47,482 nt of DNA from Neoconidiobolus thromboides FSU 785 (GCA_025603075.1 MU626410.1:1-47482); one strand, 5' to 3'. Shown: positions 6,249-47,408, counted from the first letter of the stretch. The notes: a model not told the origin generated them from the sequence alone. Numbers and translations: made by a program.

Positions 6249-6577
6249 AGTTAATTAGTAGTTTCAATAAATTCTTACAAAATATTATAATCTATAGATA
6301 ATTATATGTGCTTTATTGAATAAACTTGGCCTGAGTTGTGTTCAAGAGGAGAAAGATGTTAAACTATAGACCTATAAGTCTTTTAATGAAACCTATCTTA
6401 TTTATAAAAAGCCAAATCAACAAGTTTGTTGTTATAAATCAATATATTTAGTTTTATATTAACTTTAAACTAAAACAAAATTTTAATATTGTACTACTAT
6501 TGTACTTTATAATTAGCAATTGTAATAATGTATTTTTTGTATGAGTCTTTACTGTATTCAACAATATTTTAATATAT

Positions 6578-6674
6578 GGGGATGTATTTTTGTGGTTAAG
6601 AATTTTATTAACAATTTTCCACTCAAATAGGCCTTGAAAGATGGAAAAAGCGATGAAGTCAAAAAAACATCCCC
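6578..6674 (+). mobile_element. Short MITE, copy D (best-preserved ends)
   Basis: ATATAT|GGGGATGTATTTTT...AAAAAAACATCCCC|ATATAT; 97 bp with the family core. Confidence 0.85.
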
Positions 6675-10232: not shown

Positions 10233-10804
10233 ATTTCTTAATGGTGTCTTATTTTTTTGTTTTAATTTTAACTTATTTTACAATTGTTTAATCACATCAA
10301 TTAAATAATCTTGTTTTAATTTCATACTGTTATTATGTTTCTAAAAGAATACAAACTCATTTTTCTTCTTATGATGGAAGAACAATGGGCTTTAAAAGTA
10401 TGTGTAATAGCGATAAAGAAGCTTGAAAACATTAATAATTACTATACTAGAGGTTAGCCAATATATATGAAAATAAAAGCTAACACTATTAAAAAACCTT
10501 GCTTTTTTATAGGACTTTGAAATATATGTTATAATTATAGTCTATTATGTTATTATTGTTAAACTAGTTATTTGTTGGATACTTTTTATCACCTCTTGAT
10601 TATAATAACTTTAGACTTATTATTAGATGTACTTCTAGAAAAACAATTAGACATTACTTTCGAACTATAAAAACAGCTATGGTATTATTGTGAAGTGTTT
10701 TAGGTAGTATGATATCCTAGAAAACTGTTATTAAATAAACAGTTTTATCACTGTTAAATTCTAGTTTCGACTTTTATTTTAGATGTGTAAAATAACATAC
10801 ATTT

Positions 10805-10902
10805 GGGGTTGTCTCTTTTTGTTAGAATTTTACTAACAACTTTTTCATTTAAATAGTGTTTACAAGATGAAAAAAGTAATGAAATTAGAAAAAATATTTC
10901 CC
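10805..10902 (+). mobile_element. Short MITE, copy E (diverged)
   Basis: GGGGTTGTCTCTTTTTGTTAGAATTTTACTAACAACTTTTTCATTTAAATAGTGTTTACAAGATGAAAAAAGTAATGAAA...TTTCCC. Confidence 0.75.
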
Positions 10903-11143: not shown

Positions 11144-12658
11144 ATGTCAAACAATAAAATTACCTTATAGCGAAAATGGTGATAGTAAGAACAAAATATT
11201 AATCATAGCTAATGAGCAAGCCAACTCGATCGATTTAAATAATCGACCAAAAGAACTATTAATCAAGAAATAACAAGTGATAAAAGATTAACCGTGGATC
11301 TAGCTACCGACCTCGAGTATTTAAACAACTTGGAGTTTTCCGAGTTTATACAAGGAATAAATCACCTAAATTCATTATCAGTAAGCGAAAGTTATTTATT
11401 AGTAAAAAAAACTACTAGTTGAACCAAAGATAAAGCGGTGAATAACCAAAATTAAAATGTAAGTATCATAGATTATCTAAAAGAAAGAGAGATGATGGCG
11501 GTTTTCTACCTTGTTCCTATAGTATCTCCATTGGCCATGGAATTCATGACCAAAAATTCCTAAAGTCAATGTTAGTAACTGCATGCACAATCATCCTTCT
11601 TTCCTTAATAATGATAAAAAAACATGTAATAGATGATTATAGTATATCTGTTTTAAATGAACAACAGAATAATATTATAGATGTTAATAATCAATCACAA
11701 GAAACTAATAGTCTAGTGGCTACAAACTATGATGATCAAAGTGAACATATAGCCACCAATAAATATCCTTTAAATAATCTTGAGTTTACAGATGTAATAA
11801 AAGCCATGGGCCATATAATATCACTAACATTAAATAAGAACTATTTATTAGTAAAAAAAAATTGAAATCGAAGAAAAGATAACCCACTTTTTCATCAAAC
11901 ATTAAAATGTAAATATTCCAGTAAACCAAGTTTAAATAAAAATAATTTGAATTGCTTGTCATTTCCATATAAAGCCTCCAGTGGTCATAAAATTAAGGGG
12001 AATCTAACATTTAAAGTTACTGTCTTTAAGTTTATCCATAATCATCTACCTGTATTTATCAATAATCTAGAAGAGGGGATGGAGTTGATAAAGGATCCTA
12101 CCAAAAAGCCGATATCATTAGAATACTCAAATGAAGGAAATTTAAAGGGTCACAAAACGTACCACAGTTAGATTCAGAGGACTCAAATACTCAATTTTCT
12201 ATTGAAGAAGCTAAAGATAAATCTAAAAAACAAATTACTAATTCTATTAAGCTTCTATCGATTTCTAATGTTACAAGTAGACATTATGATAAGTTATCGC
12301 CACTAAATAAGTAGCCTCTTATTGCTAGCACATCATTTTTAAAAAATAACCATAGTACAATTATAACATGAAAACAATCAAGATAGCGCTAAGGGTAGAG
12401 CTATATTGTATGAAAGTAATCCAACTAATACTAGTCATATGAGCATTGTATCTAGAAACAATCAAGACAAAAATAATATAACTATATCACTAAATAATAC
12501 CCAAAAAAAGACTGTTATGTAATTATATCACATGAAAATAAGCAAAATAACGACAGTATCATAACTACATATGAAGTTAGTCGAAATAACATTAGCGCAG
12601 CTATATTGCCTGAAAATAATTATAAAAAAGTTCTAAAAAATTCAAACATTAAAAATAG
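11144..12658 (+). pseudogene. Frameshifted/nonsense paralog of the 13054-14709 tandem zinc-finger gene
   Basis: Starts ATGTCAAACAATAAA like the intact gene. Fragments LEYLNNLEF..GINHLNSLSVSESYLL, LKCKYHRLSKRK..FLPCSYSISIGHG..KVNVSNCMHNH and HIATNKYPLNNLEF are collinear with the intact copy but broken by stops and indels. The 3' end aligns with the KKPKH terminus. Confidence 0.85.
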
Positions 12659-13053: not shown

Positions 13054-14709
13054 ATGTCAAATAATAAAGTTAATAGAGAGGATGACAATAAAGATGATAA
13101 CTCATCAACTATAAAAAGTATTCAAGATAATAGAATAAATTCAAATACAGAAGATTCTTATAATCACAATGATAACAATAATGTTAATAAAATATATACA
13201 CAAGATGAACAAACTAAATCAATAGATTCTAATATTCAATCACAAGGAGCTAACGTCTCAAATTTAACAAAAAAACAACCAACTGAAACTTTGACTACAA
13301 AGCTCGAGTATCTCAATAGTTTAGAATATAAGAATTTAGAAAATGGTGTGGATCATCTTGTGTCATTATCATTAAGTGAAGGTTATTTATTAAACAAAGC
13401 AAAATACAAAAGGCTTAAAGATAATAGAATGAGTTATGTAAGATTAAAATGCAGGTTTCATCGATTATCAAAAAGGAAAAAAGGAGATAATAATAATTTT
13501 GTTCCTTGTCCTTATTCAATTTCAATTGGTCATGGTGTTCGTGGTAGAGATGTTTTTAAGGTTAATGTTAGTAATTGTAGCCATAATCATTATTCAATGT
13601 TTAATAAAGATAAAGAGAAGAAAATTGATAATAACAATGCCATTTTAAATAAAGAAAGCAGCGAAAATGAAAACAAAAATACATCAGTTATTAATCAACA
13701 AAATAGTACATCAGATATTGATGCTCAATCACAAAACAATACAACAAATAGTAGTAATCAGCACGAAGAAAACAGCGCAACAGATGATAATAATCAACCA
13801 CGACAGATTAATAGTGTAATATTCACAGTTAATGACAACCAAACTGAGCATATAACTACGAATCAGGATTCCTTGAATAAGCTAGAATTTCCAGATATAA
13901 TCGAAGGTGTCAACCGTATTGTATCATTAGCAGTAAGTGAAGGCTACTTATTAGTCAAAAGTAAAACAGATCGAATAAAAAATAAATCCCTTAATCATCA
14001 AGGATTAAAATGCAAATTTTATCGAAAATCAAGTTTAAATAATGATAATTTAAATTATTTGTCTTGTCCATATAAAATTTCAATCGGCCGTAAAATTAGG
14101 GGAAGTACAACCTATAGAGTAAATGTAATTAATTGTAAACATAATCATCCACCTATGTTTCAAAATGAGATTAAAAAAGAGCTACAAGTTGTAGAGGGTA
14201 TAAGTAATCAATCATCTCTATTACAATATTTGAATAACAGAAAATTTAAAGATATCGATGCAATACTACAATTGAACTCCGAAGACTTAAATCATCAATT
14301 TTCTATTAAAGATGCTAAAGAAAAATTGAAAAAGCTAATCTCAAATACTTTGGATTTACTACCAATTAATAAACTCTTATCGATTTCTGATGTTATTAAT
14401 TCGTATTATGATGAACTATTAAGAGCTAATAATCAAAATCTTTCCAATGGTGCTTTTGCTCTTCAATATGATTCTACAGAATTCGCTATAGAAAACGAAA
14501 ATGAGCAAATTAATACTAGAGATAGAATTTTAGCAATCCTAAATGAACAAGATGGTAATGATATTGGGTCTAGATCGCCTGAAAATAACCAAACCATTAG
14601 TGATACAACTTTGCCATCCAAAATAAGTCAAAATAATACTAATAGTCCAAGTATATTGCATGAAGATAATCCAGAAGAAAGGGTTAAAAAACCAAAACAT
14701 CAGCAATAG
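13054..14709 (+). CDS. Intronless Asn-rich protein with two tandem C-x17/18-C-x24-H-x-H domains (FAR1/AFT/WRKY-GCM1-fold-like putative DNA-binding protein)
   Basis: 551-aa ORF with an internal duplication: LKCRFHR..VPCPYSISIG..KVNVSNCSHNH and LKCKFYR..LSCPYKISIG..RVNVINCKHNH, each preceded by LN.LE...GV...VSL..SEGYLL. No DDE catalytic domain seen. Confidence 0.75.
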   Translation: MSNNKVNREDDNKDDNSSTIKSIQDNRINSNTEDSYNHNDNNNVNKIYTQDEQTKSIDSNIQSQGANVSNLTKKQPTETLTTKLEYLNSLEYKNLENGVDHLVSLSLSEGYLLNKAKYKRLKDNRMSYVRLKCRFHRLSKRKKGDNNNFVPCPYSISIGHGVRGRDVFKVNVSNCSHNHYSMFNKDKEKKIDNNNAILNKESSENENKNTSVINQQNSTSDIDAQSQNNTTNSSNQHEENSATDDNNQPRQINSVIFTVNDNQTEHITTNQDSLNKLEFPDIIEGVNRIVSLAVSEGYLLVKSKTDRIKNKSLNHQGLKCKFYRKSSLNNDNLNYLSCPYKISIGRKIRGSTTYRVNVINCKHNHPPMFQNEIKKELQVVEGISNQSSLLQYLNNRKFKDIDAILQLNSEDLNHQFSIKDAKEKLKKLISNTLDLLPINKLLSISDVINSYYDELLRANNQNLSNGAFALQYDSTEFAIENENEQINTRDRILAILNEQDGNDIGSRSPENNQTISDTTLPSKISQNNTNSPSILHEDNPEERVKKPKHQQ

Positions 14710-15065: not shown

Positions 15066-18046
15066 ATGGACAATAGCAATTTAAATTACTTTAGTATAAG
15101 TCCACCATTAACCAAAAGAAATTCTCAATATGAATTAAAAACAATTAAAAGTAAAACAATAGTAAAAATACCTTATTCAAACCTAAGTAACATGTATACA
15201 AATCATGAAGAAAATCCAATAAAATCTCCACCAAATGCCTTATTAAGTCCTATGAAACCCAGTACTTATCCATTAATGCAACAAGCTTTATTTAATAAAC
15301 ACAATTTTTATAATTTAGAAGATAGTTCGGGGAAATTGTACAATTATTTAAACAATAATATATTACAACAAAAACAGCAACAGTCATTAAAAGAAGAAAG
15401 GGAAGAAAGGTTACAAGTGTTAAAGAAACTAGGTAGTACTAATAATCATAGAGTAAGAGCTATGTCTCATTCTAATTCCTATCCGCCAAATTCACCAAAG
15501 AGATTAATGTTATTGTTACAATCGAATACTACCAGTAGTCAACCAAAATTATTGTCCGAAGAACCAGAGGAGTACTCATATACTAATTCAGGAACAAAAA
15601 GTCCACCATCAATAGAATTAACACAAACCTTCTCTCAAGCTTTATCCACAGATAAAAATCATTTGAATGTTCAAACAGGAAATCGACCTGGAAGTGGCAT
15701 AGTTAAACCAATCAAATTCAATGAAAAATTCACTATAACAATATTAAATGTAAATCACAATCGACCATTAAATCCAAGTTATGTGGTAGTTACTTTTGGT
15801 GATAAAATTTATCAAACTCCTTTAAGTAAAGAAAAGAATGGAAATTGGAATTGTACTTTCGAGTTTGAAGTTTCTTATCATTATCAATTATTTGGTACTT
15901 GTCAGGTAAATGACAGTTGTTAAGGATTTATTGTAATGAAATTAATTGACCTTGTTCCTTTAGTTAGATTTATATGAATATACTTGGCTTATACCCGACA
16001 GTCATAAAGGTAGAGCAGAAATAAGATTAGCTACTTTAGATGGATTTCCAGAAAGTTTTAAAAAGTAAATAACTAATAATAATATAAAATGTAATTAATA
16101 ATTAACAATAATAATTTTAGTTATTATGAATTATATGATCGAAAATATTCACTTGGAACAATATCTGAATTAGCAAGACGTACTAAATTAACTCAAAATT
16201 TAGGGGCAATTCAAGTCAAAATTAATTATCGATTTATGAAACCAAGCAGCAGAAAGGATTATTTAAAATTCAGTAGTCAACATAATAATAATAATCAATT
16301 CAGTTCAATCGAACGAGAGAGTATAAAAGAAGAAGACAATAATATTGATAATAATACTAATAATGAAGAAAATAATGAAATTGAAATTGATACTAAAGAT
16401 ATTGAAAGTGAAAGACAATTACACGAAGTTTTAATAAACCCATTGATTAAAGAAAATTTTAACAAAATTGAAGAGGACGATAACAATAATAATAAAGATC
16501 CTTATTCATATGGTAAAGTATCTCTAATTTCTGGAGATTCTGATTCTATTCACGATCAATTGTTAAATAATGATGATGATGAAGGTATGTTTAATTTTGT
16601 AGGTTCTTATATTTTATCTAAAGGTACTAGAGCAGTACTGAAGGGTATAACTAGAGTTTATTTGGCGTTTGTAAGTTTGTATTATAATATGTTATAATAT
16701 ATTTATTAATATTCTATTTTCAGAATCAAGGTTTAGAATTAAAATATATTGAATTTTTCAATGGTATATTGTTATTAGAAAAATATTATTTGAAAGAAAC
16801 AGAATTATTGTCACAAAAAGAAGAATGTGTATCGGACTCGAGTTTGTTAATTACCAATTTTTCTAAAGTGAAGGAAGCCAATTATTTTTATAAATATGCT
16901 TTAGCAGCTTACGGTTGGCGAGGTTTAGTATTTTTTTCCAAAATAACGCCTTTAACAGCAGGACAAATAATGACAGACCATGGGGCAATTAAAGAATATT
17001 TAAAATTAAATGATAATTTATTATTAGGCTATGAATTTCGATCTAATGAATTATTTCAACCTACTTATTTTATTGCTTTGGATCAAATTACTCAATCTCT
17101 AGTTATTAGTATTAGAGGAACTATGGTAATTTTATTGCTTATTGTTATTATATTATACATTCTATCCCATTAAGTTATTTTATTTATTGTTTATTATTAG
17201 AGTGTTTTAGATACTTTGACAGATTTAGTATGTGAATACCAACCTTGGCGAGGTGGATTAGTCCATTCAGGTATTTTAGCTGTAGCCCAAAGTTTAATGA
17301 AAAACGTAATTCCTAGTGTGATGGCACATGCAATACAACATCAAGTACGAAAGATCTATCTAGTCGGTCATTCGTTAGGTGGGGCCACTGCTTCATTATT
17401 AACAATGATGTTAATAGATCATTTACATGAATTTCGACTACCTAAACCAGAATTTGAACTAAGATGCTTTGCTTTTGGACCACCACCTTCCTTTTCCTTA
17501 AATTTAGCTAAATCAGAAAGATATTTACCTTATATTCATACCTTTGTGGTACAAAATGATATTATTCCTAGATTATCTTATGGTGCTATGATGGATTTTA
17601 AAGCTGCAGTTTTGGCAGCAACAGAAGTTATTAATGAACATAATCCATCAGTATTGTCAATGGAAAGGTTTACTTCGATGTTTCAAACCTCAGAAGAAGC
17701 TAAAAAACAATTAGAATTGAAATTTGAGATATTAGATAAAGCTTTGAAGCATCAATTAAAAGTGGAACAGCTAAATCCTAAATTATATTTAGCAGGGAAA
17801 ATTTATCATCTAAAGTCAAAAGATAAATTAGTTACTCCATTTGATAAGTTAAACAATGGCAGTAAAGAGAAACAAAAGAAAAAAATATTTTATTATTGTT
17901 TTTCCGAAGAGGCAGATAACTTTTTGGGGATTAAAGTTAATTCGTCGATGCTTCTAGATCATTTACCTTCCGCTTATGATTTTGCTTTGGAACAAGCTCA
18001 AGATCTGATTGATCAATTGGCCGACTTTGCTGATACTAAACTTTAA
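15066..18046 (+). CDS. C2-domain plus class 3 lipase (DAG-lipase-like) protein; ~5 exons
   Basis: C2-like segment (YVVVTFGDKIYQT..GNWNCTFEF..LDLYEY); lipase motifs VISIRGT, GLVHSG, LVGHSLGGA (nucleophile elbow), FAFGPP, DIIPRL, DHLP..Y. GT-AG introns link the track ORFs. Confidence 0.88.
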
Positions 18047-28097: not shown

Positions 28098-28286
28098 GTC
28101 TATTTTATTTAATCCGTAGCATTGAAATCGTTGTCAATTTGATTAAGTTGACTATCGTATTTTATAGCAGTATTGTTAAAGCTATAAAATGATAAAATCT
28201 TTATATACCTTTTAAAGAAATTAATGTTGAACATTTGAATCTGATAAAGTTAGTAATTAACCTATGTGTCAAATAAAACAATTTAT

Positions 28287-28386
28287 GGGGACGTATTTTT
28301 ATGTGTAAGAATTTTACTAACAAATTTTCCATTCAAATAGTGCTTAAAAGATAGAAAAAGTAATGAAGCCAAAAAAAAACAGCCCC
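28287..28386 (+). mobile_element. Short MITE, copy F
   Basis: AT|GGGGACGTATTTTT..AAGAATTTTACTAACAAATTTTCCATTCAAATAGTGCTTAAAAGATAGAAAAAGTAATGAAGCCAAAAAAAAACAGCCCC. Confidence 0.85.
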
Positions 28387-28588: not shown

Positions 28589-28684
28589 GTGGATATATTT
28601 TTTGGCTTCATCACTTTTCTATTTTTTAAGCACTATTTGAATGGAAAAAATGTTAGTAAAATTCTTGCACAAAAATACATCTCC
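28589..28684 (-). mobile_element. Short MITE, copy G
   Basis: The reverse complement reads AT|GGAGATGTATTTTTGTGCAAGAATTTTACTAACATTTTTTCCATTCAAATAGTGCTTAAAAAATAGAAAAGTGATGAAGCCAAAAAATATATCCAC|AT. Confidence 0.85.
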
Positions 28685-29854
28685 ATAGAATAATTATAAC
28701 ATGAAAAATTATTACATATATAAATACAATAGAAAATTAATAAAATTAATAAAACTTGACCAAACATTTTTTTAAAACTTGTATAGTAGTAAAAATAAAC
28801 AGAAAAGTGATTTAAGCTATAAATTCTTTTATCTGTTTTGACGTTTATAGTATAAAAAAGTCACAAGTAAGATGGTTTATAAATTATTCAATTCTATTTT
28901 AATATAGGATGCGATTGACTTACTAGAAATTAACTAAACATTACCAAAGCTTTTAAATCTATAATGCTTTGAATTTTATAAGAAAAGTTTTTGTCGATTG
29001 CTTTTAAATTTTAGATAGTACTTAATAGTACTTTTTATACTATATTTTATTATATTTTTATTGTAATATAAAATATTTTGCTTTTTATCTCCATATTCTT
29101 TATTTAATAAACTACAGGATTCTTAAATTTCGCTAAATAGACTTAAAATTCTCTAATTAAAGAATAGTACTTTGCATTTTTAGTAAATGCTTACATTTTT
29201 AAATGTACTTAAAACCTTAATATCATATGAATTTTATTTATAATATATGAAATTCTGCTTGGTTGCTGTATATTTTTTTGAAATTAAATAATAAAACTGT
29301 TTTTAAAAATTTATAGTAAGAGCATTTACTGTTTAGTGTCCGTTTTTATTTTCTCGCCTTAATTATTTGGTTACATTTGAAATGCTAAATAAAACATTTT
29401 GATGTTAAATCCTCATTCTTTAATTTTGATTATGTTTTAGCTTTAAGGGAATTGTTATAATATACTTATATCATTGTATATTATAGACACTAAATTTTGT
29501 TCTAATTTATAGTTTTATAAAATTTTGTAGTGTAAAAAGTTATCAAATATTTTAAAATATAAATTTAATTTGAAGTTTTAACTTTTAAAGTAAAAAAAGT
29601 TGACTCTAAGAATTTAGACTTGTTGACTTATATTTCTAAGTGACAGTTGTAATACAATTAATCGTATAGCCCAAAAACAATAAAATAGATAAAGTTCCAA
29701 ACACTATAATTATACTATCGCCCCCGTAAATTTAAGGAATTAAACAAAAAAAATAAGCAGGAAAAAACTAACTAGAATTCTAGTTAGTTTTTAAATCTTA
29801 GCCATTTAACTTTATTTTAATTTCTTTGCTTCACCTAATCCTTGTTTTACATGT

Positions 29855-29959
29855 GGAGATGTATTTTTGTGTTTAAGAATTTTACTAACAATCTTTCCAC
29901 TCAAATATTGCTTAAAAAATGGAAGAAGTAATGAAGTAATGAAGTCAAAAAAACATCCC
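29855..29959 (+). mobile_element. Short MITE, copy H (internal 8-bp GAAGTAAT duplication)
   Basis: GGAGATGTATTTTTGTGTTTAAGAATTTTACTAACAATCTTTCCACTCAAATATTGCTTAAAAAATGGAAGAAGTAATGAAGTAATGAAGTCAAAAAAACATCCC|AT. Confidence 0.85.
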
Positions 29960-40585: not shown

Positions 40586-40756
40586 TTCTTTTTTTTCTAA
40601 TATAAATTTATAATAAAATGTGTTTCTTGCATCCAAATTATTTAATTTTATCCAAATTTCAGCTTTTTTGATCTCTTTATCCAATCATCTCCATTCTTAC
40701 TCTTAGATTAAATAGATAATCTATTATTAATCGATTTTTAAAATATTAATAATATT

Positions 40757-41030
40757 GAGAATGTTTTTTACTAATTGTCCATTGTTGCTGCTTTTTTAAA
40801 ATTTAGAAATTAATCACTAGTGCAGCTGTTCAAACTTGGATATATACTAGCTAACTGTTTGTTTTATAATAAAAAATCAAATATCAAGCGACAAGTTAAC
40901 ATAACAATACAAATGGCCAATTATAAAATTTACCACTAGTGAGCACATATTTGAACTTAGACAACTGAGCTAATTGATTTCTAAATTTTAAAAAAGTAAC
41001 AAAAATGGACAATTGGCAAAAAACATTCCC
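40757..41030. mobile_element. 274-bp non-autonomous element with long (~70 bp or more) terminal inverted repeats
   Basis: Left GAGAATGTTTTTTACTAATTGTCCATTGTTGCTGCTTTTTTAAAATTTAGAAATTAATC matches the reverse complement of the right end, GGGAATGTTTTTTGCCAATTGTCCATTTTTGTTACTTTTTTAAAATTTAGAAATCAATT. The right flank is ATATAT. Confidence 0.8.
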
Positions 41031-41072
41031 ATATATCTAACTAAAAAATCTTAAGATAAAGATAAAGAGGGA

Positions 41073-41155: not shown

Positions 41156-42791
41156 TTAATGCTTTGGTTTGTTGAAACTTCTTTTTGGATTATTTTCAGA
41201 AGATATTGTTCTATCGCCACTATTACTTTGATTATTTTCTGACAATATATTGATATTATTGATATTATTGGTATTATTTTGATTATTTTTAGATGATATA
41301 CTTATACAAATATTATTAGTTTGACTATTTTCAGGAGGTATAGCCAATTTTTTGGAATTATTCTATAGCAATATAGTATTAATAGAAAGAGACTTATTCT
41401 TAGTATCAATCAATCCACACTAATATTGACTAATAATACTAGAAAGTAAAAGAAAGTTTGTTAATTGGCAAAAGTTCAACTAAGCTACATATTATATTTT
41501 TTAACTTTTTAGCTTCTTTAGTAGAATGTTTGAATTTAAAGTTCTTAGAATTTGGATTATGAAAAATCTTGAATCTTTATTTTTTCTCTTGCAAATAATT
41601 TAACAATGTAGCTTAACTATTTGGATCTTCAATAAGTTGTGCTACTCTATTAAACAGACTTGTAACAATAGGTGGATAATCATGATTACAATTTTTGACG
41701 TTTACTCTGAATATTGTACTCCTAAGGAATCTACGACCAATGGAAATTCTATATGGATAGAATAAATGGCCTGGATTCTTTTTATTTAACTACGGTTTTC
41801 GAAAAAACTTACATAATGAAGGTTGGTAACTGATTATGTTATATGTTTTTCATTCGTTTTTACCTTTTATTAATAGATATCCTTTATTTATTGCCAAAAA
41901 TGTGATACGGGTCACACTTTCCGTTAAATCTCCAAATTCTAGCTTATTTAAATAATCCTCATTGGTCGTTATATGTTCACTTTGATTATTATTAATTCCA
42001 ACTACTAGATTGTTATTTCTTTGCGACTGACTATTGATATATGTTGTATCGGCTTCTTGTAGGTGGTTATTAATATAAGGTGATGTTTTTTTTGATTCCA
42101 TTACTTTTCCATTTTTTAAGCGCTATCTGAGTGGAAGAATTCTTAATAAAATTCTTAAACAAAAAAATACATTCCCATATATTGCATTAGTTTCCTGAAA
42201 TTACTTATTATTATTTGTATTATTAGCTCATGTCTGAATATTAATATCAGATGCACTGGTTTGTTACTCATTTATAGCTGATACATCTGCACTTATACTA
42301 CCCTCTATTTCTTTATTTTTGTCAAGAAAAGAGGGATAGTTATGTGTACAATTATTAACTTTAACTTTGAAAATATTTTCCTTGTTGGGTTCTACGACCA
42401 ATAGAAATCAAATAAGGATAAAGTACAAAATTGTTAGTATCTATCCCGTTTTTTAAGAAACTTGATAATATTTATATTTTATTTATTTATAATTATAAAC
42501 CTTATCTTTGGTTTGTTTACTTTTGGTTTTAATTAATAAAGAGTCTTCACTTAGTCCTAATAAAACGATATGGTTTATTCCATCTGCTAAACCTGTAAAC
42601 TCTAAGCTATTTAAATATGCTTTGTTGATTGTTAAAGTTGGGATTAATTGTTTATTTGTTATTACTTCCAAGTTATTGATTCCTTGTGATTGACTATCCT
42701 ATTTTCTTCAATTATCTTGTTCATTTTACGCACTTAGTATATTATTTTCATCACTAGCATTGCTTCTATAAAATTCTTTATTATTTGATAT
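41156..42791 (-). pseudogene. Second pseudogenised paralog of the tandem zinc-finger gene, interrupted by a MITE
   Basis: The start position reads ATA TCA AAT AAT AAA, against ATG TCA AAT AAT AAA in the intact gene. Fragments YLNSLEFTGLADGINHIV, YPYLISIGRR..FKVKVNNCTHNY, HITTNEDYLNKLEF, ISIGRR..FRVNVKNCNHDYPP and NNPKRSFNKPKH* are collinear, with many stops and frameshifts. Confidence 0.85.
42078..42176 (-). mobile_element. Short MITE, copy I, inside the pseudogene
   Basis: The reverse complement reads AT|GGGAATGTATTTTTTTGTTTAAGAATTTTATTAAGAATTCTTCCACTCAGATAGCGCTTAAAAAATGGAAAAGTAATGGAATCAAAAAAAACATCACC. Confidence 0.85.
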
Positions 42792-43261
42792 TTTGTAGTC
42801 TTGATTTTCATTAGTAAATATTTGTAAATAAATTACAATAACTAAATTTCATGATTAGTTCCTATTTGTATCAAACTTCTTGTGAATTTCTACCAGCTTT
42901 TGAATAAAAAGGGCATAATTAGAGAAGCATGGTAGTAATTATATGTGTTTAGTTTAAAAGCTCGGTTCAAATTTTGTCTAATTTTGATTTTGAATAAAAT
43001 CATAAATTAGACACTAAGTGCTGAAAAACAGTTGCTTTTTTCCCTAGTCTTACTGTATTAGAATATTCTTTATCTAATATTTAATATAAAAAAATTAAAT
43101 TTATGCCATATAAAGAGAAAAAAATGAAACTGAAAAAGTTTAAACTTTAATCAACTTTTACTTATCCATATCAATTTGGTAAGTTATAAAAGATCGAATT
43201 TATATTACCAAATAAGGTAAAAATGGAGCTATATCTTTTCTTTAAATAGTCCAAATTGAAT

Positions 43262-43445
43262 ATACTTGCCTAGCAGCAATGAACTTAATCAAACCCCTTC
43301 TTGTTCAGCCAGGGAAGTTAAGGAAGGTCAGCACATTCATAACATAGTGGGAAGCGACTTGAGAATAATGTGTGCTATTGGGTATTATATAGTGAGGATG
43401 TTCTAGCTCTCAATTGGTTGAGCTATTTGAGTTAGCTACTGTTCT
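43262..43445 (+). ncRNA. Candidate structured RNA, possibly a divergent U1 snRNA variant or pseudogene
   Basis: GC-richer island in an intergenic region. ATACTTGCCTAGCAG matches the human U1 5' end at 13/15. GTGGGAAGCGACT..ATAATGTGTGCTATTGGG is collinear with U1 SL3/Sm-site sequence (15/18 at the Sm site). Local hairpins are present. SL2 length and the closing helix fit poorly. Confidence 0.35.
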
Positions 43446-46169: not shown

Positions 46170-47408
46170 TTAATTCTTAAGTTTAGATTTGAGGTCTTCG
46201 ATTTCCTTAACTGAATCCTTGCGGAACTTAGCATATTCAGAAGCCGTTTCAACTAATCTTTTACGGTTCTTATCATTATCTTCCAATAATTTACTATGTT
46301 GTTCGAATAACTGTTTATTCTCAGCTGTTAAAGCTTCCACTTGAGATTGAAGGTCTTCATATTTTTGATTCTCTTGTTTAATCTCTTTGTTTTCTTCTCT
46401 TAATTTATTTACTTCAGTTTCAAGATCTTCAATTTGAAGCTTGTAATTTGAGGCTTGTCCATTCTTTTTAGTCATATCCGCCATCTCTTCTTTTAACTTG
46501 TTATTAGAAAGACGTATACTATCTATTGTAGTCGTAAGTTCATGGATCTTATCAGTGGCACGATCCGAGATCTCTTCCGCTTTAACCTTTTCTTCTTTAA
46601 ACTTTTGTTTTTCTTGTTCAATAGTACTAATGGTTGCCTTTAACTCTTCAATTTCTTTTTGGCATTTTTCAAGTTGAGCTTGTTGTTCGCTTTGTTGTTT
46701 TTTAATACTTTCATTTTCTTCTTTAATACTTCCATTTTCAGTTTCTAGACTTTCTACTTTGGTTCTAAACTCTCCCATACTTTCTTCATGCTTTTCACGT
46801 AATTTAACCATGGTAATTTCATTCTGTGCTTTACCACTTTCAGCTTCTTGTAATTCAAGTTTAAGTTGTTCAATAGTAGCAGAATCAGTGGAAGATTGTT
46901 GACCATCGGTTTCATTTTTCTTACGCTCTTCTTCAAGTTCTTTGATAGCATCAGTTAACTTTTGTTTATATTCTTTAAGTTCTTCATCAACTTTTTGAGT
47001 ATCAATACCATTAACTTGACCTTTTTTGATTTCTTGTTTCAACTGTTTGATTTCCTCTTCTAATTTATTCTTTTCTTCGACAGTGAATTGAATTACTTCT
47101 TTTTGTAAATCTTCATTATTACCGTTTAAAAACTTACTTTCTTCTTCCTTTTTTTTCATTTCTTTTTCATATTTTTCTAAGGTTGCTTTAACTTGCTCAT
47201 ACTCCTTCTCTATCAACTCCTTTCTCTTTAAGTTTTCCTTTAACTTTTTTAACTCTTCTTGGGCTTCTTCAGCTAAAGCTTGACGCTGAATACTTTGGGT
47301 ACTTACACTATTCTTTTTAGCATAAGAGCTACTAGTTAAATAATAAACAAGGGGGGCAGTGATGGCTGAAGCAACAGCAGCAGTGGTGATATATTTTGAA
47401 TTATCCAT
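46170..47408 (-). CDS. Long coiled-coil protein with N-terminal hydrophobic anchor, intronless, 412 aa
   Basis: ITTAAVASAITAPLVYYLT followed by continuous E/K-rich heptads; no family recognised. Confidence 0.8.
   Translation of the reverse strand: MDNSKYITTAAVASAITAPLVYYLTSSSYAKKNSVSTQSIQRQALAEEAQEELKKLKENLKRKELIEKEYEQVKATLEKYEKEMKKKEEESKFLNGNNEDLQKEVIQFTVEEKNKLEEEIKQLKQEIKKGQVNGIDTQKVDEELKEYKQKLTDAIKELEEERKKNETDGQQSSTDSATIEQLKLELQEAESGKAQNEITMVKLREKHEESMGEFRTKVESLETENGSIKEENESIKKQQSEQQAQLEKCQKEIEELKATISTIEQEKQKFKEEKVKAEEISDRATDKIHELTTTIDSIRLSNNKLKEEMADMTKKNGQASNYKLQIEDLETEVNKLREENKEIKQENQKYEDLQSQVEALTAENKQLFEQHSKLLEDNDKNRKRLVETASEYAKFRKDSVKEIEDLKSKLKN

Follow-up and report, generated by a model that had tools for sequence, protein, structure and literature searches.

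What is the open reading frame (ORF) at 13054-14709 of contig MU626410.1 from Neoconidiobolus thromboides FSU 785 (GCA_025603075.1), a host gene or the debris of a transposon, and what would its protein do? The window that we analysed is the whole 47,482-bp contig (C153), from a genome of about 27% G+C. In the initial annotation this ORF was read, together with two broken copies in the same window, as a lineage-specific family of double zinc-finger proteins, derived from a transposase and turning over quickly. Here we put forward, as a fairly probable reading, that 13054-14709 is a real host gene of this fungus, kept by selection, and a probable regulator carrying divergent FAR1-type modules.

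The live gene, its repeats and its dead paralogues

The ORF list gives 13054-14709 (plus strand) as a single exon of 551 open codons, predicting a protein of 551 aa, and the remaining five frames of the same interval hold 33-108 stops each. At this base composition the probability of 551 open codons by chance is about 2e-21. Frame maintenance was simulated by mutating the live ORF at random with the base composition of the window. Under such neutral change, 2% divergence leaves the frame open in 10% of the runs and 5% divergence in 0.36%, while at 10% or more none of 5,000 is open.

The composition of the protein is strongly segmented. An acidic N-terminal tail rich in N, S, Q and T is followed by a basic repeat, an acidic low-complexity linker, a second basic repeat, a conserved C-terminal region and an acidic tail, the latter ending in a short basic motif that one of the dead paralogues (copy B, below) shares. 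Repeat 1 has an isoelectric point (pI) of 9.7 and a net charge of +11, repeat 2 a pI of 9.65 and a net charge of +9, and the segments between and around these modules are acidic and N/S/Q/T-rich (pI 4.1-4.9). Eukaryotic sequence-specific transcription factors are commonly built in this way, with basic modules set between acidic low-complexity segments. The conserved C-terminal region (aa 379-470; 14188..14463, plus strand) comprises 92 residues after repeat 2 and before the acidic tail; it belongs to no known family and is retained at 40-45% identity in both dead paralogues.

The two repeats, each about 115 aa long and each predicted to form a FAR1-like zinc module, cover aa 77-192 (13282..13629, plus strand; E 4e-54 with the repeat profile) and aa 264-378 (13843..14187, plus strand), and are 44% identical to one another (E 7e-35). 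Their putative ligands are spaced as C133-x18-C152-x22-C175-x-H177-x-H179 in repeat 1 and C320-x17-C338-x22-C361-x-H363-x-H365 in repeat 2, and these six cysteines are the only ones in the protein. The initial annotation had described one intact intronless gene with two repeats, each with a C-x17/18-C-x24-H-x-H pattern, an extra conserved cysteine and an upstream LN.LEF...G...SEGYLL segment. The 551 open codons and the internal alignment agree with the former, and every element of the latter is found in both repeats.

Two paralogues are recognised in the window by protein similarity. Pseudogene A (11249..12323, plus strand) lies in tandem 2.1 kb upstream of the live gene, the two being also linked by direct repeats (families D2 and D4) at a spacing of 2103-2104 nt. 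Pseudogene B (41451..42803, minus strand) is inverted and 27 kb downstream, with a C-terminal tail that runs to about 41156. In both, the two repeats and the C-terminal region still follow one another as in the live gene. Copy A is spread over three reading frames, which implies frameshifts, carries TGA, TAG and TAA stops and has lost 2 of the 10 ligand positions; copy B follows one reading frame with at least 14 in-frame stops, again TGA, TAG and TAA, and has lost 5 of 10. Thus 7 of 20 Cys/His motif positions are gone from the four dead repeats, whereas all 10 are retained in the live gene. A reading of the stops as lying in introns was rejected: they stand opposite residues that align in the intact protein, which makes them nonsense changes, TGA, TAG and TAA all occur among them, and ligand positions too have been lost. 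The pseudogenes of the initial annotation are hence real, broken by stops and frameshifts within the same two-repeat layout. The limits given for them (11144-12658 and 41156-42791) depart a little from those drawn by protein similarity, being either wider or displaced, although the lower limit of 41156 fits the conserved ...KPKH C-terminal end of copy B at 41156-41347.

Comparison of the six repeats indicates that they cluster by position and not by gene. The first repeat of the live gene shares 55% identity with its counterpart in copy A and 40% with that in copy B, against 34% with either copy's repeat 2. The internal duplication is therefore older than both gene duplications, and the two-module layout preceded them.

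The copies are old. All three differ at 35-41% of aligned nucleotides (Kimura two-parameter distance, K2P, 0.49-0.62), and at a K2P of about 0.5 in DNA of 26% G+C the synonymous sites between copies are saturated. As a rough reading of the stop density, the relics have drifted by some 0.1-0.17 substitutions per site since their death. Because a neutral divergence of 5% closes the frame in 99.6% of the simulations, while the paralogues have reached the distances above, the open frame of the live gene is not compatible with neutrality. The census combined a TBLASTN search of the window with the protein and six-frame searches of the whole genome (24.6 Mb, 799 contigs) with the protein and the repeat profile. 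No fourth copy was found in the genome even at E <= 10, so that the family counts one intact and two dead members, all three on a single contig. A family expanding and decaying quickly, as first supposed, is not what these numbers describe; this is slow decay of old copies and not fast birth-and-death. Two gene duplications, a tandem one and an inverted one 27 kb away, would account for the arrangement, and the copies they added have long been dead.

Sequence relatives and predicted fold

By its sequence the protein appears as an orphan, and close Neoconidiobolus relatives may be missing from the libraries searched. In a word-indexed search of 5.8 billion clusters the whole protein matches itself alone, as does its C-terminal region (aa 380-475), and an exhaustive HMMER search of 1.84 billion representative proteins with the six-repeat profile returns only the protein itself at E <= 0.001. 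The proposal of a lineage-specific family is supported by this. Pfam searches with the whole protein and its segments returned sub-threshold noise only (DUF730, RNF220, DUF2058, Ubiquitin_3).

The same genome provides a positive control. A six-frame scan with the FAR1 profile (PF03101) at E <= 10 finds matches on one contig only, C57, and none at 13054-14709. The C57 matches include three small intact FAR1 genes above the curated cut-off (L008:1123-1806, minus strand; L009:1441-2064, plus strand; L010:1426-2184, plus strand). These are intronless, code for 207-252 aa, lie within about 8 kb and carry the FAR1 domain at the N-terminus in each case. A C57 FAR1 protein, too, finds itself alone in the word-indexed search.

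Predicted structures point more clearly to a family. The ESM Atlas feature neighbours listed for each repeat belong for the most part to FAR1, AFT and ZSWIM3_N clusters, at scores of 0.84-0.85 that count as no more than a lead. Among the structural matches listed, the neighbours of repeat 1 are FAR1, AFT and ZSWIM3_N clusters with template modelling (TM) scores of 0.63-0.66, and those of repeat 2 are FAR1 clusters (TM 0.63-0.68); for both repeats they are overwhelmingly associated with FAR1, AFT or Mutator-like element (MULE) proteins (TM 0.63-0.68 over about 100 of about 120 residues). We further modelled repeat 2 with AlphaFold2 from a ten-row alignment of its own family (predicted local distance difference test, pLDDT, 63). 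The model runs H-e-H-E-E-insert-E-E-H, namely a short helix, a bridge, a 14-residue helix, two long strands, a loop, two strands and a helix, with a four-stranded core after the helix (H19-32, E35-47, E50-61, E77-84, E91-97). Strand 1 of the repeats reads EGYLL-x-K. In the model's own numbering Cys 57 falls in strand 2, Cys 75 two residues before strand 3, and His 100 and His 102 after strand 4. One C57 FAR1 domain, modelled likewise (pLDDT 66), has an identical element order, and in both models equivalent places are taken by the cysteine that closes strand 2, the one ahead of strand 3 and the H-N-H that follows strand 4.

The two models were also compared through their neighbours in a VIA-align search of 48,161 Protein Data Bank (PDB) chains, of which the top 50 were listed. 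Repeat 2 and the control share 32 of 50 neighbours, including KA1, DUF302, the AMPK core, the VCR of METTL16, RnlA, SciW and Aft2; so large an overlap from that many chains indicates that the two models are very similar in shape. With repeat 2 the DNA-binding protein Aft2 (4lmg_A) aligns at rank 11 over 77 residues (Z 5.5, root-mean-square deviation 4.1), its 21% identity being the highest among the listed rows. With the control it takes rank 1 (Z 6.9, 19% identity), over the same chain range of 42-137. Furthermore, the FAR1-type family within the WRKY-GCM1 superfamily is characterised by an insert between the cysteines, an H-x-H instead of an H-x-C, and a helix that precedes strand 1 (Babu et al. 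2006, PMC1702500). All three traits are seen here, the helix in the predicted model.

Several observations weigh against this assignment. No FAR1, AFT, WRKY or ZSWIM3_N match is obtained from Pfam, either with the whole protein at E <= 1 or with each repeat at E <= 10, and PDB sequence searches with the protein and the repeat profile return chance-level rows only (OCP, SETDB2). Alignment of the repeats with the C57 FAR1 alignment by hhalign gives a probability of 0.1%, both alignments being shallow. The structural model itself is of moderate confidence and comes from a shallow family alignment of 10 rows. Foldseek finds nothing in the PDB at E <= 0.001; its best match has an E of 0.08, and the Aft2-DNA structure 4lmg stands at rank 4 with an E of 0.29. 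In VIA-align the alpha+beta folds of DUF302 and KA1 (Z 6-7) outrank Aft2, so that PDB fold searches are not discriminating. Finally, strand 4 reads T-Y-R-V and V-F-K-V, aromatic but never with a Trp in the six repeats, while a strand-4 Trp is "typical" of the FAR1-type family (Babu et al. 2006, PMC1702500) and is present in the C57 genes. The initial annotation had suggested a WRKY/GCM1-like fold, with FAR1 (PF03101), AFT (PF08731) and WRKY as families for comparison. At the level of profiles this comparison fails, with no link from Pfam, PDB sequences or hhalign, and Foldseek gives nothing significant; predicted structures support the fold. Taking both sides together, we regard the repeats, from the models, as likely to be highly divergent WRKY-GCM1 modules of the FAR1/AFT type, whose membership sequence profiles do not recover.

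In an alternative scenario, the gene is real but its FAR1-like modules do not bind DNA, serving instead to bind RNA or protein or to sense zinc or redox state, or else they represent a new zinc-binding alpha+beta fold. The PDB neighbours at equal or higher Z are indeed alpha+beta proteins that do not bind DNA (DUF302, KA1, AMPK), sequence ties the repeats to no DNA-binding family, and an extra conserved cysteine stands next to H-x-H. However, the genuine FAR1 control draws the same unrelated PDB neighbours, which thus reflect the general shape of the fold. Moreover, the named Atlas neighbours listed are FAR1, AFT, ZSWIM3_N or MULE-associated, the ligand placement and the H-N-H match FAR1, and the modules are strongly basic. 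We therefore consider this scenario unlikely, and retain divergent FAR1-type modules as the preferred reading of the repeats.

Transposons and the origin of the copies

FAR1-type domains occur most often in MULE transposases, as the DNA-binding portion at the N-terminus (Babu et al. 2006, PMC1702500), and this raises the question of whether the three copies belong to a transposon. In the 551-aa protein Pfam identifies no other domain, and so no catalytic transposase part; the ORF lacks a transposase core, as the description "catalytically deleted" had anticipated. In the genome as a whole, the MULE transposase domain (PF10551) has no match at E <= 0.01 and the AFT profile finds no AFT-type gene. 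No inverted repeats of at least 40 nt flank any of the copies; short terminal inverted repeats (TIRs) and target-site duplications lay outside this search, since chance matches would swamp them in DNA of 26% G+C. A search for TIRs or an adjacent transposase therefore comes out negative for long inverted repeats and for the MULE domain. A transposase ancestry of the gene is plausible only by analogy with how the FAR1 family evolved (Babu et al. 2006, PMC1702500), and is not seen at this locus.

The copies are very unlikely to be remnants of a Mutator-like or other transposon family, with the ORF as a DNA-binding fragment of a formerly autonomous element and not a host gene. Such an origin would agree with the usual residence of FAR1-type domains in MULE transposases, with the presence of several copies, two of them dead, and with a contig rich in miniature inverted-repeat transposable elements (MITEs). 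Against it, the copies number only three, on one contig, and none is found elsewhere by the profile at E <= 10. Neither a MULE domain nor long inverted repeats accompany them, and DNA similarity between copies was detected in the coding region alone (D2, D4). In addition they are old (K2P about 0.5-0.6), yet one open frame requires selection. For the same reasons the earlier picture of an expanding system is not sustained: no MULE domain was detected in the genome, and it has only three copies.

The MITEs deserve separate attention, as the pseudogenes had been linked to them. For the 83-nt core of the MITE, a first look yields about 2,900 candidate sites in 24.6 Mb, or about one per 8-9 kb; the 42 that were scored are mostly 90-98% identical, and the element often occurs in inverted pairs. 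At least 8 pieces are scattered across the 47,482-bp contig (repeat families; 2073-2155, 2862-2940, 6576-6658, 10802-10884, 28286-28368, 28598-28676, 29854-29936 and 42088-42183). The last (42088..42183; families D3, I1 and I8, strand unassigned) lies in the linker between the two repeats of pseudogene B. Alignment to the intact gene shows a 90-nt insertion in this pseudogene, which may be the MITE copy. With so many sites genome-wide and several in the window, the association looks like chance, the element having landed in a dead or dying gene. At 90-98% identity, the MITE copies are far more recent than those of the gene.

DNA-binding domains of transposase origin can retain an affinity for the ends of transposons. 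One could envisage a genome-defence factor whose double finger would recognise the MITE, or the repeats at its ends, and repress or mobilise it, and the presence of one MITE inside pseudogene B and of others nearby would fit. In its fullest form, the gene, species-restricted and fast-evolving, would have been recruited to recognise the termini of a hugely amplified MITE, as a tamer or mobiliser of transposons in a genome with no MULE transposase detected, its paralogues dying as the target changed. We judge the defence role highly improbable, and the recruitment history equally so. With about 2,900 sites, several per 47-kb contig are expected by chance. The MITE copies are of much later date than those of the gene, a dead copy has received the insertion and not the neighbourhood of the live one, and the hidden Markov model search of 1.84 billion proteins shows no sequence similarity to any transposase.

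Two further observations concern repeats in this genome. The MITE is abundant without a detected MULE transposase domain to move it. A foldback at 40756-41031 (family I4), between NFU1 and the end of pseudogene B, consists of a 59-nt inverted repeat pair, 88% complementary, around a 158-nt spacer.

That the ORF is nonfunctional, either the last paralogue not yet stopped or a chance open frame, accords with two of three copies being dead and with the lack of a homologue elsewhere, but has very little to recommend it given the minute probability of 551 open codons by chance, the closure of the frame in nearly every simulation at 5% neutral drift where the paralogues have diverged by about 50%, and the intact state of all ten Cys/His positions in the live gene.

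Proposed function and comparison with known systems

How might a protein with two divergent FAR1-type modules work? Each module would hold one Zn2+ by the cysteine at the end of strand 2, the cysteine before strand 3 and the two histidines of H-N-H, and from the model coordination by these four ligands is probable; the third conserved cysteine, beside H-N-H, would be a spare or alternative ligand. By analogy with characterised relatives the basic modules (pI about 9.7) probably bind DNA. They would do so via the first strands of the sheet and the preceding helix, as in Aft2, WRKY and GCM, where contact with the major groove is made by the first strands (Babu et al. 2006, PMC1702500). As a linked pair the modules would recognise a bipartite site, and the acidic N/S/Q/T-rich flanks and the conserved C-terminal region would serve in activation or partner binding. 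By the same analogy the protein is probably a sequence-specific transcription regulator.

The closest parallels are stand-alone FAR1-type proteins, including those of C57. The live gene is like them in its predicted element order, in the insert between ligands, H-N-H and basic domain, in the lack of a transposase, in its local clustering and in being intronless. Nevertheless, there is no detectable sequence similarity to the C57 genes, which have one domain where the live gene has two in tandem, and which carry a C-x-C before strand 3 in place of the extra cysteine beside H-x-H. In strand 4 the FAR1-type family usually has a Trp and the live gene a Tyr or Phe, and the conserved C-terminal region is private to the latter's family. 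For fungal FAR1-domain factors, a search of the literature found nothing specific.

Aft proteins carry an iron-sensing Cys motif, of which the live gene shows no sign, although no search was aimed at it. Among the hit lists, Aft1/Aft2 (PF08731; Aft2-DNA, 4lmg) is the only solved DNA-binding relative, aligned over the chain range that the FAR1 control also uses. It is a transposase-derived factor without the catalytic part (Babu et al. 2006, PMC1702500), as the protein proposed here may be, and has a single domain instead of a double one. The Z of 5.5 between Aft2 and repeat 2 does not stand clearly above background, and the AFT profile does not match.

Tandem arrangement has precedents in the superfamily, since Group I WRKY proteins of plants and multi-FLYWCH proteins of animals likewise carry two or more WRKY-GCM1 modules in one factor (Babu et al. 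2006, PMC1702500). Classical WRKY domains (PF03106) differ in their WRKYGQK strand, C-x4-5-C spacer and lack of an N-terminal helix, against EGYLL-x-K, a 17-18-residue spacer and a predicted helix in the live gene; their Pfam profile does not match it, and neither WRKY nor FLYWCH structures occur in the fold hit lists. FHY3/FAR1 and the MULE transposases have the same predicted type of N-terminal domain, and FAR1-RELATED SEQUENCE clusters carrying MULE and SWIM domains make up most of the Atlas structural neighbours. However, these proteins possess a MULE core and a SWIM finger, neither of which is present in the live gene.

The neighbouring ORFs of the window are fungal genes of ordinary kinds: a GMC oxidoreductase, Rad10/Ercc1, NFU1, pieces of importin-13, a class-3 lipase and Opy2. 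Just downstream of the live gene, the ORF at 15066-15923 (plus strand, 285 aa) ends in a sub-threshold C2-domain match (19.6 bits, the cut-off being 22), and its frame probably continues into further exons. The ORF at 46170-47408 (minus strand, 411 aa) has a sub-threshold bZIP_1 match at aa 192-240 followed by coiled-coil-like matches, and is possibly another transcription factor. An Rfam scan of the whole window at gathering thresholds finds no RNA family, a U1 snRNA-like candidate at 43262-43445 falling below the U1 cut-off.

The gene opens no new class of system; it is a new, unusually divergent tandem protein of predicted FAR1 type, restricted to this species. Stand-alone FAR1/AFT-type fingers represent a known route from transposase to transcription factor that is almost unstudied in early-diverging fungi. 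The live gene illustrates the extent to which such a domain may diverge, with neither a Pfam match nor a relative among 1.84 billion proteins while the predicted fold and the ligand pattern are retained. It thus offers a test case for the structure-based annotation of orphan regulators, and a candidate lineage-specific regulator in an insect-associated fungus.

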